Source: Paramicrosporidium saccamoebae KSL3
Taxonomy: Eukaryota > Fungi > Cryptomycota
NCBI GenBank assembly: GCA_002794465.1
Contig: MTSL01000084.1
Coordinates: 1 to 20,027, forward strand
DNA length: 20,027 nt
Reading direction: 5' to 3'
The notes under the pieces were generated by a model. That model was not told where the DNA came from, made no database searches, and saw nothing but the letters and a program-made list of their open reading frames with translations. How positions within the stretch are numbered: the stretch's first letter is position 1; each line of letters begins with the position of its first letter. Both the position numbers and the translations under genes were made by a program. Positions 6,101 to 20,027 of this stretch are shown piece by piece.

Positions 6101-6271
6101 GGTCCCCGGTCGCGTTAATTGCTGCCGGTTTATTAAAATTGACTTGATCAGTGTGGGGAGTGTAATACGATGATATGTATTGATGCGTGTTGACTAGTTT
6201 GCGTTAGTGTCGGTTGATGTATGTTGACAAGGTCATGATGGAGAGTTTATTTCGAGCAATTTGTGATAAAT

Positions 6272-6406
6272 TGTCATGACAAGCCACTTTTATGATAAAT
6301 CACCATGACAAACCACTTATAAAGCACCATGACAAACTACTTATAAAGTACCATGACAAACTACTTTTATGATAATGCACCACGACAAACTACTTTTATT
6401 ATAAAC
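6272..6406 (+). repeat. Tandem array of five 24/29-bp units (29-24-24-29-29), consensus caccatgacaaactactt(ttatg)ataaag
   Basis: Units start at 6272, 6301, 6325, 6349 and 6378. The perfect palindrome TTGTCATGACAA lies at 6271..6282. Confidence 0.92.
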
Positions 6407-10970: not shown

Positions 10971-11203
10971 TGTGAGCGATGTGAGATGGGATATATGGAC
11001 TAGAGATCTATCAAAAAGTATCCACTTATGACGGGTAATCCTGATACCTATCCCACAATCTGCTGTTTTGAGGATGGCAGCCTATATATGCCACAATGAA
11101 ATAATTCGCTCATCAGCACACTTCTTAATAAAACGATCATTATTTTGGTGATAGTCTTTTTATTTCTCGCCTCTAATTCTTTTTCCATGTCAAATCCACT
11201 ACT

Positions 11204-11249
11204 TACCGTACCGTACCGTACCACCACCACTACCACTACCACTACCACT
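11204..11249 (+). repeat. Compound microsatellite (TACCG)3 followed by ACC/(CTACCA)n
   Basis: taccgtaccgtaccgtaccaccaccactaccactaccactaccact, seen directly in the LTN1-MRT4 spacer. Confidence 0.85.
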
Positions 11250-11308
11250 CAGTTAGTTGCCCAGCTAATACTTTACTATGATCCCGGTGACCAGGGCTAT
11301 TGGTGGAA

Positions 11309-12062
11309 ATGGCAAAGTCTAGGAGAGCCAAAGTTGGTAAGAATCTCCACGTTTGGCGCTATATTTATAGTTAATCTTACAAAGACAGAGAAAAAGGGAC
11401 GAGAGGTAAAGGGAAAGCTTGTGGAGCAGATCCGCGAAACTGCTACCCAGTACCCCCACATGTACCTCTTCCGCGTCCGCAACATGCGCAACGTGCTCTT
11501 CAAGAACATTCGCACTGAATCCACCGGTCGTTTCTGTATTGGAAAGAATAAGGTAATGGCGTTTGCGCTTGGAACCGAAGAGGCGTCAGAGTGCATCCCC
11601 GGTGCAGCACAACTTGCCCGTCGTCTCCGTGGCGACGTTGGACTCTATTTCTCGCATGATACACCCGAAACTGCTACAGAGATGCTCGAAAAGCACGAGT
11701 CGGCAGATTTTGCCCGTACTGGAAACAAGGCTGACATGACGGTGATTGTGGAGGCGGATCCACAGGGACTCCGGAACGTTGAGACCATGCAGCCCCTCTC
11801 TGCCACCATCGAGCCGCAGCTTCGACAGGCCGGCATGCCCACCAAACTACGCGGTGGAAGCGTTCTGCTGGCTGCTGATCAGTACGTCATCTGCCGCGAA
11901 GGAGAGACGCTGACTTCCGACCAGACCCGTCTGCTAAAATGCTTTGGCATCAAAATGGCCTCATTCCGTGTTGCCATTGTGGGACATCTTTTCGATGGTA
12001 AATTTGAAGAATTCCAAGATCCATTCCAAGAAGACGACAATGTTGCCGAAATGTCCGAGTAG
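11309..12062 (+). CDS. MRT4: mRNA turnover protein 4 / 60S assembly factor Mrt4; join(11309..11336,11371..12062), 239 aa
   Basis: The spliced N-terminus MAKSRRAKV|VNLTKTEKKGRE is Mrt4-specific. An L10/P0-like body follows (RVRNMRN, IGKNKVMAFALG, GDVGLYF, DFARTG, EPQLRQAGMPTKL, GETLTSDQTRLLK). There is no P0 C-terminal FGLFD tail. Confidence 0.93.
11337..11370 (+). other. 34-nt intron (MRT4, phase 1)
   Basis: GTAAGAATCTCCACGTTTGGCGCTATATTTATAG has a GTAAGA donor and TAG acceptor, and restores the conserved N-terminus. Confidence 0.9.
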
Positions 12063-12268
12063 AAAGTGAGTGCGAGGATCTGAGAGGATTTAAAGTTGAG
12101 AATTAGTAGCAGGGCATAAAGTGATTTATATATAAACATTGCCCATATAGTCGTGCCATGTTATGTGATATATGATGAGGTGTGACACATTCATTATACG
12201 TGATTCAGCAATGGCCCTCTCAATAGTATTCTTGTATCAACTTTAAAATTGAATAACACACCAACTCG

Positions 12269-12330
12269 ACACCCGACCCAACCCAACACCCGACCCAACC
12301 CAACACCCAGCACCCAACCCAACCCAACAC
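12269..12330 (-). repeat. (TTGGG)-type repeat with a duplicated 17-bp unit; ten G3 tracts on the minus strand (G-quadruplex motif)
   Basis: acacccgacccaaccca x2 (12269..12302), then acacccagcacccaacccaacccaacac. Confidence 0.85.
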
Positions 12331-12343
12331 ATCTCATGGCTGT

Positions 12344-13753
12344 TTATTTGGAACGCTTATAGGTGGGCTCCTCTGCGAGCTTGCCATACTGCAGCCTCAA
12401 AGAGTTGAACGGACTCTTTTTAGTGTTTCCTTCATTGTAATGCGGATTCACCCGCTTCCAAATCATCCACGTCAGCTTCAACAGTCGATTCTCATCCATA
12501 GGCGTCTCGGGTAGTTTGCTGAGGAATTGCATGCAATTCTCATATTCGAGCGACATTAGGCGTGCCTCGTGGAGCTTCAAGAGGGCAAGCGAGGCGCAAA
12601 CCAACATGTCCATCCCCCAGAACAGAAACAGATCCCATATCCGGGTGGCCAGCGAGAATGGAAAGCCGAGGAAGAGCGTCAGATACCATTTTGTAGCATA
12701 AATGGAAGTTGTAATGTGGAACGACTCGAGTCGGGCCTGGAGTGCCGGCAGATATTTTCGCATCAATTGCTCCTGTACATAGAACGTCTCAAAAAGTAAC
12801 GGAAATCCAGCCGTAAACAGCGACCGCAGCCCATCACGTTCCATCATACTGCGGAGTACACTAAAGGCCATCTCTTCTTCAAAATACAGCAGTAGGAACG
12901 CCGCAATAGTGGACATTCCCTGACAATAGCCCACTTCGGGGTCGTGATTGGAAAAGGCAACCAGGATCTTAAAGAGGCTCACCTGGGCAGAACTGAACCG
13001 GGCCTTGAACAGAATGTGGTCTCGAAGGGTCCGCTCAATATCCAGATCTATCTGTCGCTCAAATCCTGAAATTTTCAAATAGAGTTCGCGATACACCGAG
13101 GATGGCGATGATACGGGTGGCACTCCCAGAAAGAGAGCCCACACTTTGGTCCGCAGACATTCCGGCACCCCCTTTACCAGCCGATACTCGAATTTTTTAT
13201 GGCTCTTGGGCCATTCTGACCGCTCTTTAACAAACTCGAGCACTTTGAGCATTTCCACCCATTTAATAGCCCGTCTTGCCTCTTTCCTACCACGCCGTTC
13301 CTGTTTCTGTTGAAGCTCACGTTCCTCGACAGACAAACCTGCATCAGCATTGTCTCCCTTTGGAGCCACGACGATGAATCCATACCGGTCCAACACTGAA
13401 TAGTCTACATTATCCTCTGAAACGGAAGGACTCTGGCTAAAGTTGCTGGAAGCATCTGAACAATCGGACAGGTTGCTCAAATTGTCCACCGAGCATACAC
13501 TAGAGTCGCCCCAATTGGTGCCCAGATACATATTGTGGGCACTTGTATTTTCCAATTCCAACAGTCGCGCCATGTCAGCATTCTTTAAAAATACGCGTTC
13601 CGCCTCTTCATCTCCATTCGTACCGTCCGCGCCGTCCACACCATTCGTGCCATTCGCGCCACTAGCGCCACTGGCTCCACTCACCTTGCTCATCCTGCCA
13701 TCTTCACTGTCCACATCGCAACTAACCTTGGCGCTATCCAAAAGATTCTCCAT
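12344..13753 (-). CDS. TBC (Rab-GAP) domain protein, USP6NL/TBC1D10/Gyp-like, 469 aa
   Basis: DRYGF, KGVPECLRTKVW, Arg finger RQIDLDIERT, Gln finger GYCQGMS, YATKWYLTLF and RIWDLF; both catalytic fingers are intact. Confidence 0.92.
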   Translation of the reverse strand: MENLLDSAKVSCDVDSEDGRMSKVSGASGASGANGTNGVDGADGTNGDEEAERVFLKNADMARLLELENTSAHNMYLGTNWGDSSVCSVDNLSNLSDCSDASSNFSQSPSVSEDNVDYSVLDRYGFIVVAPKGDNADAGLSVEERELQQKQERRGRKEARRAIKWVEMLKVLEFVKERSEWPKSHKKFEYRLVKGVPECLRTKVWALFLGVPPVSSPSSVYRELYLKISGFERQIDLDIERTLRDHILFKARFSSAQVSLFKILVAFSNHDPEVGYCQGMSTIAAFLLLYFEEEMAFSVLRSMMERDGLRSLFTAGFPLLFETFYVQEQLMRKYLPALQARLESFHITTSIYATKWYLTLFLGFPFSLATRIWDLFLFWGMDMLVCASLALLKLHEARLMSLEYENCMQFLSKLPETPMDENRLLKLTWMIWKRVNPHYNEGNTKKSPFNSLRLQYGKLAEEPTYKRSK

Positions 13754-15729: not shown

Positions 15730-17340
15730 CTAATCCCATGGATTCTCGGCTTCTTCAATTGGAGTTGACGATCCTAGAACAGCTGGTTCATAGCGTTTTC
15801 GGTATACAACATCCTCTTCGTTTTGATCAGTGGAATAGTGCGTGCTCACACTTGCGCCAAAGGCAGTAAATTCTTCAGTCCGGGTAGGCTGTATCTCGGC
15901 AGACACTACAGAGGAGGGTCGGGAAATCTCTACTGGGGCGCCTCCCAGCTGGTCCTTTAGGGCAATACACCAATCAACCATATCCTCTTCTACAAAGCTG
16001 CATAGTACATGGCGACGCTCACTGCGACTGAAAAACGACGTGCCACCAGGTACGGTAATGGCAAAGGCATGACTTCCGGCCTTGGGATCGGGGACGATAG
16101 AGGTTTCAGGATGTAAGAGAGGAATTGACAAAATTGGTTGAATTAGCGCCTGGGTGGCGTCAAAGTTCGGATCATCAAAAGTCAACCAAATTCTTGAAGC
16201 CGACTGATTCAGCTCGGCAAGGGCCTTACTATGAAGTCGCATTGTTGAGGTGGGAAATCGATACTGCTTTCTTTGCTCATCGTTCAGGGTGCCGGCAAAT
16301 TCAGGAGAATAGCAGTGGAGGAATCCAGAATCTGTGAGGATGCAGTACATGACGTTCCAGCTCCTTCCAAAGGTGCTCGGCCTCATCAGAAAGCCACTTT
16401 TCATCACACCTACTGCGCACACCGTGGGCTCCATCTCCGAGGTGCTCAAACTGCAGCCTATTTGGGTGAGTGCCGAGGCAAAGAATCCATCAACAGGTGG
16501 AGCTTCCACCTGCCATTCCCAGTCTAGACGACATCTCCTCAGTGCATTATTCCATTCTACTAACGCATCAGATGTCCTTGTCACGGTTGCGCAATCTGAT
16601 ATCTGTTCTGCAGCTGCCGCCAGTTGTTGTCCCTTTACCCGCATGGCTTCACCCAGGATTCCTTTCAATGTCGTCGCCAAGTCATGCTCGAGTTGTCTCG
16701 TTTTGGTAAAAATTTCGATTAGAATGGCGCAGTATCGCCTCTTTTCCTCTAAATACAAGCCAATTCGATGTCGTAACTGCTGTTCCGTAATGAAAATGTC
16801 CGTGACGCTCAGTGCTTCAGCGAGGGCCTCGTCTTCTCCACTTTTTGAGGCAATCTTTGTCCTCACCTTCCATCCCTTCTCATGCGTCAACATGACAGTG
16901 TTCAGAGCCTCGTGCTGCCTGCCCAATCGCCCTTGTATCTCTGCCATTCGCACCTTAATCTCCTTCCCCCTCGTCCTGAGCTCATCTCGGAGCTTTTCCA
17001 GCTGCAACAATACCGTTTCCTTTAAGAAGCGTCCGAATGTCTCTCCGTCGGTACTGCACCGAAGGGCATATGTTTGCAATGGACCAAGCCAGGCATGGCT
17101 ATTCCTGCCAGCACTTGGTGAAGCCAGCGGGGAGCCAGCCGCCAAAGTAAGCTCTTGAGGCAGTGCAGTCCCCAAGTTGTTGGCAACTTTGTTATAGGCC
17201 ATGTGGATCTGTCTCTCCACCTCCACAAGCTCATTAAAGGACGAGTAGTGGACATGAAGTACGGTCCGCCATGACTCTAGTCTCTCGCCAATCAGCTCGA
17301 GAATGCTAGACTCGACGGGAGAGTTGAGGGCCATTGCCAT
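15730..17340 (-). CDS. Coiled-coil (BAR-like) plus split PH-domain protein, Slm1/Slm2-like, 536 aa
   Basis: An N-terminal ~280-aa helical/coiled-coil region is followed by PH strands KSGFLMRPSTFGRSWNVMYCILTDSGFLHCY and, after an insert, AFAITVP...RHVLCSFVEEDMVDWCIALK. The orthology is inferred from architecture only. Confidence 0.65.
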   Translation of the reverse strand: MAMALNSPVESSILELIGERLESWRTVLHVHYSSFNELVEVERQIHMAYNKVANNLGTALPQELTLAAGSPLASPSAGRNSHAWLGPLQTYALRCSTDGETFGRFLKETVLLQLEKLRDELRTRGKEIKVRMAEIQGRLGRQHEALNTVMLTHEKGWKVRTKIASKSGEDEALAEALSVTDIFITEQQLRHRIGLYLEEKRRYCAILIEIFTKTRQLEHDLATTLKGILGEAMRVKGQQLAAAAEQISDCATVTRTSDALVEWNNALRRCRLDWEWQVEAPPVDGFFASALTQIGCSLSTSEMEPTVCAVGVMKSGFLMRPSTFGRSWNVMYCILTDSGFLHCYSPEFAGTLNDEQRKQYRFPTSTMRLHSKALAELNQSASRIWLTFDDPNFDATQALIQPILSIPLLHPETSIVPDPKAGSHAFAITVPGGTSFFSRSERRHVLCSFVEEDMVDWCIALKDQLGGAPVEISRPSSVVSAEIQPTRTEEFTAFGASVSTHYSTDQNEEDVVYRKRYEPAVLGSSTPIEEAENPWD

Positions 17341-17451: not shown

Positions 17452-17583
17452 GGATTGTTCAGCTGGGTAGTTGTGCGATAAAAGAGTGTATTGTTCAGCT
17501 GGATAGTTGTGCGATAGAAGAGTGGATTGCTTAGCCAGGTATTTGGGCGATAAAGGAGTGGATTGCTTAGTTGGGTATTTGGG
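17452..17583. repeat. 36-bp minisatellite, ~3.7 copies
   Basis: Units start at 17452, 17488, 17524 and 17560 (partial). Consensus ggattg(t/c)t(c/t)agctgggta(g/t)ttg(t/g)gcgataaaagagt. Confidence 0.92.
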
Positions 17584-17775: not shown

Positions 17776-18420
17776 ATGATGTTCACACTTGTACTCCTGC
17801 TTGTCTGCGCTGTCCTCGTTTTGGCGAGCAAGACTCAAGAATCTGTATTCAGCATAATTTCGATCGACTATAACACTGTATCTCATGATCCTACACGCGC
17901 TGCAAAGGACTTGGGGGTCATGCGCGTCGACGTTGTGGGCTTTTTGAACTTTAAAGATGGTAGCGCTCTCCAGAATGCACTACAGTCTCACGGCTTCAAG
18001 ACATACCATATTCCAGAGAATCAGTTTCTACTTGCCAGTGTCGCTCCGTTGGAGAAGAACGCGACTCTGGGCTACACATACACAACGGCAGAGGACGCTA
18101 TAATTGTGCTCTACGGGATGACGGGTACTGCTGCTGAGCTAAAACTCAACGAACAGGCCGTCGCCAACGCGGTACTTGGTAGCGGTAGACGCTATGTATT
18201 TTTCGAGCCCTCCAAAATTAGATACCGCAAAGGGTCGATGGGTTACGCACAAAAGATGTCCCAAGAGGTGGCTGGGAGCAAGTGCAACGGGATGCGATTT
18301 GATCTTAATGGAACAAAGCCGCCTCGAGGAATAGCCAAATTTCTTAGGGACTACTTTTGGTTCCTACTAGCTGGTGTACTGGTTGCCCTTGGAATAGTTG
18401 TTTTCATAATAGTCCATTAG
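17776..18420 (+). CDS. Hypothetical single-pass membrane protein (signal peptide, lumenal domain, C-terminal TM), 214 aa
   Basis: Hydrophobic N-terminus MMFTLVLLLVCAVLVLA, C-terminal FWFLLAGVLVALGIVVFIIVH, gccATG start context, promoter motifs upstream and two N-X-T sequons. Confidence 0.78.
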   Translation: MMFTLVLLLVCAVLVLASKTQESVFSIISIDYNTVSHDPTRAAKDLGVMRVDVVGFLNFKDGSALQNALQSHGFKTYHIPENQFLLASVAPLEKNATLGYTYTTAEDAIIVLYGMTGTAAELKLNEQAVANAVLGSGRRYVFFEPSKIRYRKGSMGYAQKMSQEVAGSKCNGMRFDLNGTKPPRGIAKFLRDYFWFLLAGVLVALGIVVFIIVH

Positions 18421-18901: not shown

Positions 18902-19177
18902 TTGGGCCGTATTTATGCCATCTCACAGCAGCAAAGAAGCTTCCTTCCGTTAACTAATGCCTGTGATATCTCCCTTACTATGCGGCAAGAAACTCGATTA
19001 CCACCAATGACTGGTTTAGAGTCGTAGTACTTTGAATAAACTTTTCACAAGATAACTACCACTAATGATCCTACTACTAAATCACAGGTGACAGCCAATC
19101 AACGGTTTGTTTACTCATAGTAGCTTTTGGATCCGACCAATAAGGACTAAATTCGGACGTCTCTGATACCGAAAAGC

Positions 19178-20027
19178 ATGAATCAGCAGAGGAAACTGGG
19201 ATACTTTTTATCTTTCCTGCTGTTCGCTAGTGACTTTGTCGACGCAGAATGGTCGATACTTTCATCGATAGGTAAAGAAAAGAACAGGTGGATTCCCGAT
19301 ATATCTAGCTATGCGGCCAACGCTTACAATAATGTCACATCAACATTTGCCCCAACAGTTGAAGAAACGGGTGGGTGGATGCCTGACGTTTCTGGATATG
19401 CCTCTAATGCTTACGAAACGGCAAAGGCAACATTCTCACCGACTGTCGACGAGACAAGCTGGTGGGTGCCTGATGTTACTGGATATGCCTCTAGTGCTTA
19501 TAATAATGTGACATCAGCATTTGCGCCCGCAGTTGAAGAGACGGGCAGTTGGGTGCCTGATGTTACTGGATATGCTTCTAGCGCTTATAATAATGTGACA
19601 TCGTCACTTGCACCCACAGTTGAAGAGACGGGTGGATGGATTCCTGACGTTACTGGATACGCTTCTAGTGCCTATGAAAATGTGACATCGGCACTATCGC
19701 CGGCAGCTGAGGATGCTAGTGGGTGGATTCCCGATATATCAGAATACACGTCAAATGCTTACAACGCAGCAAAGTCGGCACTCTCACCGACAGCTGAGGA
19801 GACTAGTGGATGGATTCCAGATATATCAGAATACACGTCAAGTGCCTACGATACGGCAAAGTCGGTATTCTCGCCGGCGGCAGAGGAGACGAGTGGATGG
19901 ATTCCTGATGTGACCGGCTATGCTTCTAGTGCTTACGAAACGGCAAAGTCGGCACTCTCGCCGGCAGCTGAGGAGGCTAGTGGGTGGATTCCCGATATAT
20001 CAGAATACACGTCAAATGCTTACAACG
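19178..20027 (+). CDS. Secreted tandem-repeat protein (29-aa repeats), 3'-truncated by the window end; absent from the ORF track
   Basis: ATG at 19178 opens a stop-free frame to 20027: MNQQRKLGYFLSFLLFASDFVDA (signal-peptide-like), EWSILSSIGKEKNR, then repeats such as WIPDVTGYASSAYENVTSALSPAAEDASG. Confidence 0.88.
   Translation, partial: MNQQRKLGYFLSFLLFASDFVDAEWSILSSIGKEKNRWIPDISSYAANAYNNVTSTFAPTVEETGGWMPDVSGYASNAYETAKATFSPTVDETSWWVPDVTGYASSAYNNVTSAFAPAVEETGSWVPDVTGYASSAYNNVTSSLAPTVEETGGWIPDVTGYASSAYENVTSALSPAAEDASGWIPDISEYTSNAYNAAKSALSPTAEETSGWIPDISEYTSSAYDTAKSVFSPAAEETSGWIPDVTGYASSAYETAKSALSPAAEEASGWIPDISEYTSNAYN
19289..20027 (+). repeat. 87-bp coding tandem repeat, 8 full copies plus a partial ninth
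   Basis: Trp codons start units at 19289, 19376, 19463, 19550, 19637, 19724, 19811, 19898 and 19985. Confidence 0.97.

Follow-up and report, generated by a model that had tools for sequence, protein, structure and literature searches.

The stretch of DNA analysed here, 20,027 nt that we refer to as the window, comprises positions 1 to 20,027 of contig MTSL01000084.1 from the Paramicrosporidium saccamoebae genome (assembly GCA_002794465.1, MTSL00000000; Quandt et al. 2017, PMC5701793). This organism belongs to the Rozellomycota and is an intranuclear parasite of amoebae. At the right-hand end of the window lies the 5' part of a gene for a repeat protein, the subject of this report, which is encoded on the forward strand in a frame that is open from position 19178 to the window end (19178..20027, +; 283 codons plus one base) and continues past it. 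The open reading frame (ORF) starts at the ATG at 19178-19180, which has an A at -3 and is the first to follow an in-frame stop codon (19148-19150); both of the other forward-strand frames contain stops. That the ORF does not end within the window is due to a break of the assembly in the tandem array, where a gap of 159 Ns follows directly after position 20027 (contig positions 20028-20186). The translation begins with a signal-peptide-like leader of 23 residues, MNQQRKLGYFLSFLLFASDFVDA (19178..19246, +), and a 14-residue spacer, EWSILSSIGKEKNR (19247..19288, +), leads from it to the first repeat. There are then eight complete units of 87 nt, or 29 residues (19289..19984, +), and a partial ninth, WIPDISEYTSNAYN plus one nucleotide (43 nt; 19985..20027, +), that is cut by the gap.

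The array is highly regular. Tandem Repeats Finder gives a period of 87, and the degenerate motif W-[IVM]-P-D-[IV]-x-x-Y has nine matches at a spacing of exactly 87 nt, compared with none in 100 shuffled sequences. The unit consensus is W-I/V-P-D-V/I-S/T-G/E-Y-A-S-S/N-A-Y-x-x-x-x-S-x-F/L-S/A-P-A/T-A/V-E-E-T-S/G-G, in which W1, P3, D4, Y8, A12, Y13 and P22 are invariant, each being specified by two or three codons with the exception of W, which has a single codon. The mean ratio of non-synonymous to synonymous differences (pN/pS) among the units is 0.30 in the coding frame versus 1.1 and 1.8 in the shifted frames. The repeats are real, protein-coding and under purifying selection. An initial annotation, made from the letters of the window, had described 29-aa repeats with an invariant W, PD, Y, AY and P and had argued for selection at the protein level; both observations are fully borne out by the eight full units and one partial unit in the window, by the restriction of the low ratio to the proposed frame and by the varied codons of the invariant residues. 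Its account of the composition was equally accurate, since the repeat region has no Cys and is acidic (net charge -26 over 232 aa, isoelectric point (pI) ~4.05, with 26% Ser+Thr) and NVT sequons occur in exactly the units named, 1, 3, 4 and 5. The leader, too, has the features of the signal peptide that it was taken for: a basic n-region (R5, K6), a hydrophobic core of 11 residues and V/A at -3/-1, followed by EW in the mature sequence, with both the signal peptide and its cleavage site being judged by eye. It is too short to serve as a membrane anchor, since no stretch of 19 residues reaches a Kyte-Doolittle hydropathy (KD) of 1.4.

Beyond the gap the gene runs on to a stop at contig positions 21835-21837, the last residues being ...ATMNHL. 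The repeat resumes there as (P)DISGYTSSAYETAKSYIPSTAPSEPST and is followed by two degenerate units, ISGYATRMYDSTSSYL... and VATGYFDTISTHGHEMANQFL.... As the partial ninth unit before the gap (DISEYTSNAYN) differs from the unit that follows it (DISGYTSSAYE), the array must have at least ten good units in addition to the two degenerate ones. The post-gap repeat is in a different assembly frame from the pre-gap part, which is uninformative because the length of the gap is only an estimate.

A search of an index of 5.8 billion proteins found one relative of the post-gap protein, P0001, with an identity of 75% across 100% of the query. It is encoded on a JGI (Joint Genome Institute) metagenome contig of 4813 bp (L002), at whose 5' end the frame is still open. 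Without any interruption of this frame, P0001 has eight W-x-P-D units at an exact 29-aa spacing, the degenerate units, a transmembrane helix, a C-terminal domain and a stop after ...ATMNHL. Because P0001 carries both in the same frame, the array and the membrane/C-terminal part are one protein. A WD40 gene and then a gene for a 231-aa membrane protein follow downstream as separate genes, an order that is the same in P. saccamoebae. Synonymous divergence (dS) between the two orthologs is ~0.9, with a dN/dS of 0.13-0.16 in all segments, and the transmembrane and juxtamembrane segment is 88% identical. The repeat number is a lower bound (at least ten), both assemblies being broken inside the array. 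With respect to the units themselves, W1, P3, D4, Y8 (with one His), S10, A12, Y13, S18, F/L20, P22, E25 and E26 are kept in both species. The identity among units is 0.61 and 0.73 within the two species versus 0.56 between them, which points to some concerted evolution. Some units of both P. saccamoebae and P0001 have a sequon of the form N-x-S/T at unit positions 14-17, which may be a hint of glycosylation.

The gene had been thought to be unannotated, but a deposited gene model of 1072 aa already begins at the ATG at 19178 and spans contig positions 19178-23311 (11403-15536 in the L001 numbering of this contig), across the gap. This model is most likely chimeric, crossing the gap and running on into the downstream WD40 gene, because the P0001 contig ends the repeat protein after ATMNHL and has the WD40 gene called separately, and because the model itself gives WD40 Pfam matches and its 1072 aa are approximately the sum of the three pieces. 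The WD40 gene has an N-terminal exon ('SPADSVELLP') that looks similar to DPH7.

After the degenerate units there is only one strongly hydrophobic segment, ATVVAIAAVLVYAAYNY (KD 1.77), and then 443 residues to the stop; the single segment above KD 1.4, VVAIAAVLVYAAYNYKAII, corresponds to a transmembrane helix of 17-19 residues. Lys and Arg are found only on the C-terminal side of this helix (KAIISSVKNAVTSAGSWILRNVK), its N-terminal flank being acidic or neutral. Given the leader and the positive-inside rule, which places the basic side of the helix in the cytoplasm, the orientation is probably that of a type I protein, with the C-terminal domain in the cytoplasm and the repeats on the outer or luminal side. 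The C-terminal domain (443 aa) is basic and probably all-helical, with a pI of 9.0 and 7 Cys, as against the pI of 4.05 and the absence of Cys in the repeats. Extension of the contig, which the initial annotation had proposed, was thus successful for the C-terminus (the transmembrane helix, 443 aa and ...ATMNHL), while the full repeat number is hidden by the gap. Its description of the product as secreted, in the sense of a soluble protein, is contradicted by the transmembrane helix and the conserved 443-aa domain that follow the array in the same ORF.

The 29-aa unit also has the helical periodicity that had been proposed for it. In the hydropathy profile of the eight units the dominant Fourier peak is at 3.6 residues (power 189 versus 40 for the next), which is the eighth harmonic of the 29-residue unit; there are peaks at 3.6, 14.4 and 9.7 residues and none at 11. 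The helical moment of unit residues 4-21, calculated at 100 degrees, ranges from 0.28 to 0.48 and is larger than that of at least 97% of shuffled sequences in all but one of the 15 units tested (94% in the remaining unit), and the best moment angle is 95-105 degrees in 14 of the 15. Each unit therefore probably forms one short amphipathic helix, extending roughly from D4 to S21. The moment is nevertheless modest, with a mean hydrophobicity of ~0.1, and the apolar face consists of Ala, Tyr and one Phe/Leu. In five of the seven P0001 units, position 17 is a Pro (...YDSIPSVFSP...) and falls within the proposed helix of 18 residues, which it would shorten. AlphaFold2 places one helix in each unit, as expected, with very low confidence: the pLDDT (predicted local distance difference test) score is 37 when P0001 is modelled in full from its single sequence, and 32 when four units are modelled with a pseudo-alignment of 7 rows. 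Such models are too poor for any fold comparison, and the structure prediction suggested in the initial annotation has thus yielded a helix per unit and, at a pLDDT of 32, no usable model.

A word-indexed search with the repeat region gave no match, and similar searches with the post-gap part and with a two-sequence profile of the C-terminal domain found nothing beyond P0001. Within the sensitivity of these homology and profile searches, there are no homologs in other microsporidia or rozellids. Scans of metagenomes and viral sequences for the C-terminal domain and for a degenerate two-unit DNA motif were negative; a PDB sequence search with the C-terminal part and a PDB profile search with the repeat gave nothing significant, and Pfam gave nothing credible for either the C-terminal part or P0001. 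The Pfam families reported for the repeat region (QIL1, TORC_M, the pertussis toxin S5 family Pertus-S5-tox, lyxose isomerase and CsmC) are repeat-summed artefacts that have no passing stretch. MIC13/QIL1 (PF15884, a MICOS subunit) is the clearest case: the whole protein scores 38.1 bits against a cutoff of 26.6, with a best stretch of 22 residues and none that passes. This illustrates how tandem repeats can sum into a false family assignment. The earlier statement that the repeat is not a recognised family agrees with the Pfam, PDB, homology and profile searches, which give no described match. By these sequence comparisons, no described family includes either the repeat or the C-terminal domain, and on the data examined the family is made up of P. 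saccamoebae and one metagenomic relative.

On balance, we favour the view that the region encodes the extracytoplasmic N-terminal part of a membrane protein that is restricted to this lineage and crosses the membrane once (type I), in which a multivalent array is coupled to a cytoplasmic domain. The predicted architecture of leader, array, transmembrane helix and C-terminal domain is very probably correct; a function in surface binding or sensing, which is argued from that architecture alone, is a tentative suggestion. In such a protein a cleavable signal peptide would be followed by at least ten acidic, Ser/Thr/Ala-rich units of 29 aa, the two degenerate units and the transmembrane helix of 17-19 residues, and then by the strongly conserved juxtamembrane segment and, in the cytoplasm, a conserved C-terminal domain of ~440 aa that is basic and all-alpha. 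Tyr, Ala and Phe/Leu would lie on one face of each helix, and Pro-containing acidic linkers with the invariant Trp would bound it. The array could be a repetitive multivalent stalk or binding surface, possibly both N- and O-glycosylated, and would be located either on the outer face of the plasma membrane of the parasite or on the luminal side of a secretory or spore-forming compartment. The conserved transmembrane/juxtamembrane region would then couple the array to the cytoplasmic domain.

Several considerations weigh against this view. In the P. saccamoebae assembly an unsequenced gap separates the two halves of the gene, which are in different frames, and their continuity rests on P0001, which itself lacks a 5' end. 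Both the leader and the membrane orientation depend on rules of thumb. The AlphaFold confidence is very low (pLDDT values of 37 and 32), and the ectodomain may in fact be disordered.

The layout of a membrane-anchored array is not without precedent in fungi. The signalling mucins Msb2 and Hkr1 and the wall sensors Wsc1 and Mid2 have a signal peptide, a repetitive, Ser/Thr-rich and probably glycosylated ectodomain, a single transmembrane helix and a cytoplasmic part. The protein described here resembles them only in this layout (a leader, 26% Ser+Thr and one helix). Unlike them, it has conserved aromatic residues and helical periodicity where they are mucin-like, and a much larger, folded cytoplasmic domain (~440 aa); moreover, the sequences are not similar, and neither half of the gene product nor P0001 has a WSC or any other Pfam domain. 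By this comparison of layouts, it would be an analogue of the signalling mucins and wall sensors and not a member of either group.

If the proposed architecture is right, this is a lineage-specific membrane protein of the surface or secretory pathway in one of the few sequenced organisms at the boundary between the Rozellomycota and the Microsporidia. Such proteins are candidates for a role at the parasite-host interface or in spore construction, topics that are nearly blank in this group. There are also practical corrections to be made, in that the deposited model is probably chimeric and the repeat number is fixed by neither assembly. Apart from this, it is one among many orphan repeat proteins. 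During their growth inside the host the Rozellomycota are naked protoplasts and, because P. saccamoebae grows in this way within the nucleus, a surface protein would face the amoeba nucleoplasm. A more novel extension is that the acidic, aromatic-rich array could be a surface receptor at the host interface, which would bind basic host nuclear components (histones, chromatin) or nuclear-envelope lipids in a multivalent manner and relay or anchor this binding via the cytoplasmic domain. We give this extension little credence; if it were true, the protein would represent a new class of surface receptor in intranuclear parasites.

The site of action leaves room for other interpretations. P. saccamoebae makes chitinous spores with a polar filament, and the protein could be a structural part of the spore wall, of the polar filament or of its anchoring apparatus, with repeats that polymerise or bind chitin via their aromatic residues and a membrane anchor that holds the structure to the sporoplasm. 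The periodic invariant aromatics and the Ser/Thr-rich composition are features of carbohydrate-binding and wall proteins, and the restriction to a single lineage is reminiscent of microsporidian spore proteins. However, there is no polar-tube protein (PTP) or spore-wall protein (SWP) Pfam family among the matches, and a large conserved cytoplasmic domain such as that found here is not typical of the known polar tube proteins. We consider a structural role in the spore rather unlikely.

Alternatively, the protein could reside in an internal secretory compartment (endoplasmic reticulum, Golgi or vacuole), with luminal repeats and a C-terminal domain that recruits cytosolic machinery. The evidence for a type I topology applies to such a resident just as well, nothing in the sequence specifying the plasma membrane. 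Nevertheless, no retention or retrieval motif was noticed at the C-terminus (...ATMNHL), and variable arrays that have been homogenised within a species (0.61-0.73 versus 0.56) are more typical of exposed surface proteins, so that an internal location, too, seems fairly improbable.

The initial annotation had proposed, among other roles, a soluble secreted protein with amphipathic helices that bind lipid, similar to the apolipoproteins, perilipins or LEA proteins. Apart from the leader, what speaks for a lipid binder is the significance of the helical amphipathicity relative to shuffled sequences with its dominant 3.6-residue peak, the conservation of aromatic residues of the interfacial type (W, Y), and the best database match (P0002, see below), which is an 11-mer amphipathic repeat protein. 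Apolipoproteins, perilipins and group 3 LEA proteins likewise consist of tandem amphipathic helices parted by Pro or Gly. However, the 11-mer repeats of that group contrast with the strongly acidic 29-aa unit found here, in which there is no period of 11 or 22, and a Pfam scan at E<=0.01 found none of the Apolipoprotein, Perilipin or LEA (LEA_4) families. In addition, the moment is modest (0.28-0.40) with a mean hydrophobicity of ~0.1, the net charge is -26, Pro17 falls within the proposed helix in most of the P0001 units and the same ORF runs on into a membrane anchor and the 443-aa C-terminal domain. We consider the lipid-binding proposal very unlikely.

There remains the question of a distant relationship to other repeat proteins, either true homology to phage tape-measure proteins or to a protein of the ascomycete Plectosphaerella plurivora (KAH6685777.1), or a horizontal acquisition from one of them. 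When 1.84 billion representatives were searched exhaustively by HMMER with a profile of two repeat units, five weak matches emerged (P0002-P0006), all of them repeat proteins of other kinds and none with an informative Pfam, PDB or source name; the repeat search that had been suggested thus produced matches and no characterised family. P0002 (E 2.9e-15) comes from a metagenome and, judging by its PHROG and PDB matches, is a tape-measure-like protein built of 11-mer repeats; P0003 (E 4.3e-11) is the P. plurivora protein, in which a unit of 29-30 aa is repeated at least 18 times. P0004 and P0005 are metagenomic repeat proteins with recurring IPDVS.[FLY]AT motifs, which look like phage tail fibres and have no convincing PHROG or Pfam match, and P0006 is a junk repeat. 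The window protein itself matches phrog_1535 with an E of 3.7e-14 over only ~125 profile positions of a repetitive helical region, other tape-measure PHROGs being weaker. These PHROG and HMMER E-values are inflated because they are sums of weak per-unit matches between repetitive sequences of similar composition.

The tape-measure repeats (phrog_1535, phrog_58 and P0002) share with the array an Ala/Ser/Asn/Gly-rich helical character, periodic aromatic residues and the local motif DV..[YFW]A[ST].AYN[ND]V[ST], but the tape-measure-like period is 11 residues, and the host kingdom, genomic context and architecture are all different. The genes around the array are eukaryotic (listerin, BRF1, RabGAP, PH/BAR and WD40) and are not phage tail genes, and neither the motif nor the C-terminal domain occurs in any viral contig scanned. 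The tape-measure match is probably compositional or convergent. P0003 resembles the array in its 29/30-aa period, in a P-T-A-E-E-x-S linker and in the register of its aromatic positions. An hhalign comparison with its units gives 24% identity, in register over two units, with a P of 4.7e-4 and a probability of 33%, and one in 300 column-permuted profiles reaches the same score; this control is biased, P0003 having been pre-selected by the real profile, and shows only that the match depends on residue order. On the other hand, P0003 has no signal peptide, carries its anchor at the C-terminus, lacks the Paramicrosporidium C-terminal domain and is itself uncharacterised. For all of these matches homology is unproven and convergence is more likely, and we attach only a very small probability to descent or acquisition from either source. 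In its own right, P0003 has units of the form LPPTAEE.SKQY.DL..Y.PV.FNEPDG at residues ~370-930, a presequence-like N-terminus and a C-terminal transmembrane helix.

Finally, the possibility that the array is a non-coding minisatellite or an assembly artefact with one frame left open by chance can be practically dismissed, as its proximity to the gap and the similar break in the P0001 contig are outweighed by the low pN/pS in the proposed frame only, the stops in both of the other same-strand frames and the retention of the array in a second species in frame with a conserved domain.

Elsewhere in the window there are eukaryotic housekeeping genes for a P-type ATPase, a polysaccharide deacetylase, listerin, a uL10/Mrt4-like protein, a TBC RabGAP, BRF1 and a BAR/PH protein. 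The pair formed by the repeat-protein and WD40 genes is flanked by two small orphans of 214 aa (window positions 17776-18420, +) and 241 aa (positions 15675-16400 of L001). Both have an N-terminal signal-peptide-like leader, a C-terminal transmembrane helix and no credible Pfam match; they were tested as possible paralogs and are not paralogous. The 241-aa orphan is conserved on the P0001 contig (L002 3931-4626). There are also several short tandem repeats in the window. About 3.6 copies of a 36-bp repeat, GGATTGYTCAGCTGGGTAGTTGTGCGATAAAAGAGT (17452-17581), lie in the 435 bp that separate the divergently oriented genes for the BAR/PH protein (15730-17340, -) and the 214-aa orphan, and could be a repeated promoter element. 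Another repeat, of 24/29 bp, is present in 4-5 copies at 6260-6405 with the core CACCATGACAAACTACTT, and no ORF of at least 100 aa extends over it. Finally, the stretch from the uL10/Mrt4-like gene (11145-12062, +) to the end of the RabGAP gene (12344-13753, -) includes a CCAAC-rich microsatellite with periods of 12, 17 and 24 (12261-12330).

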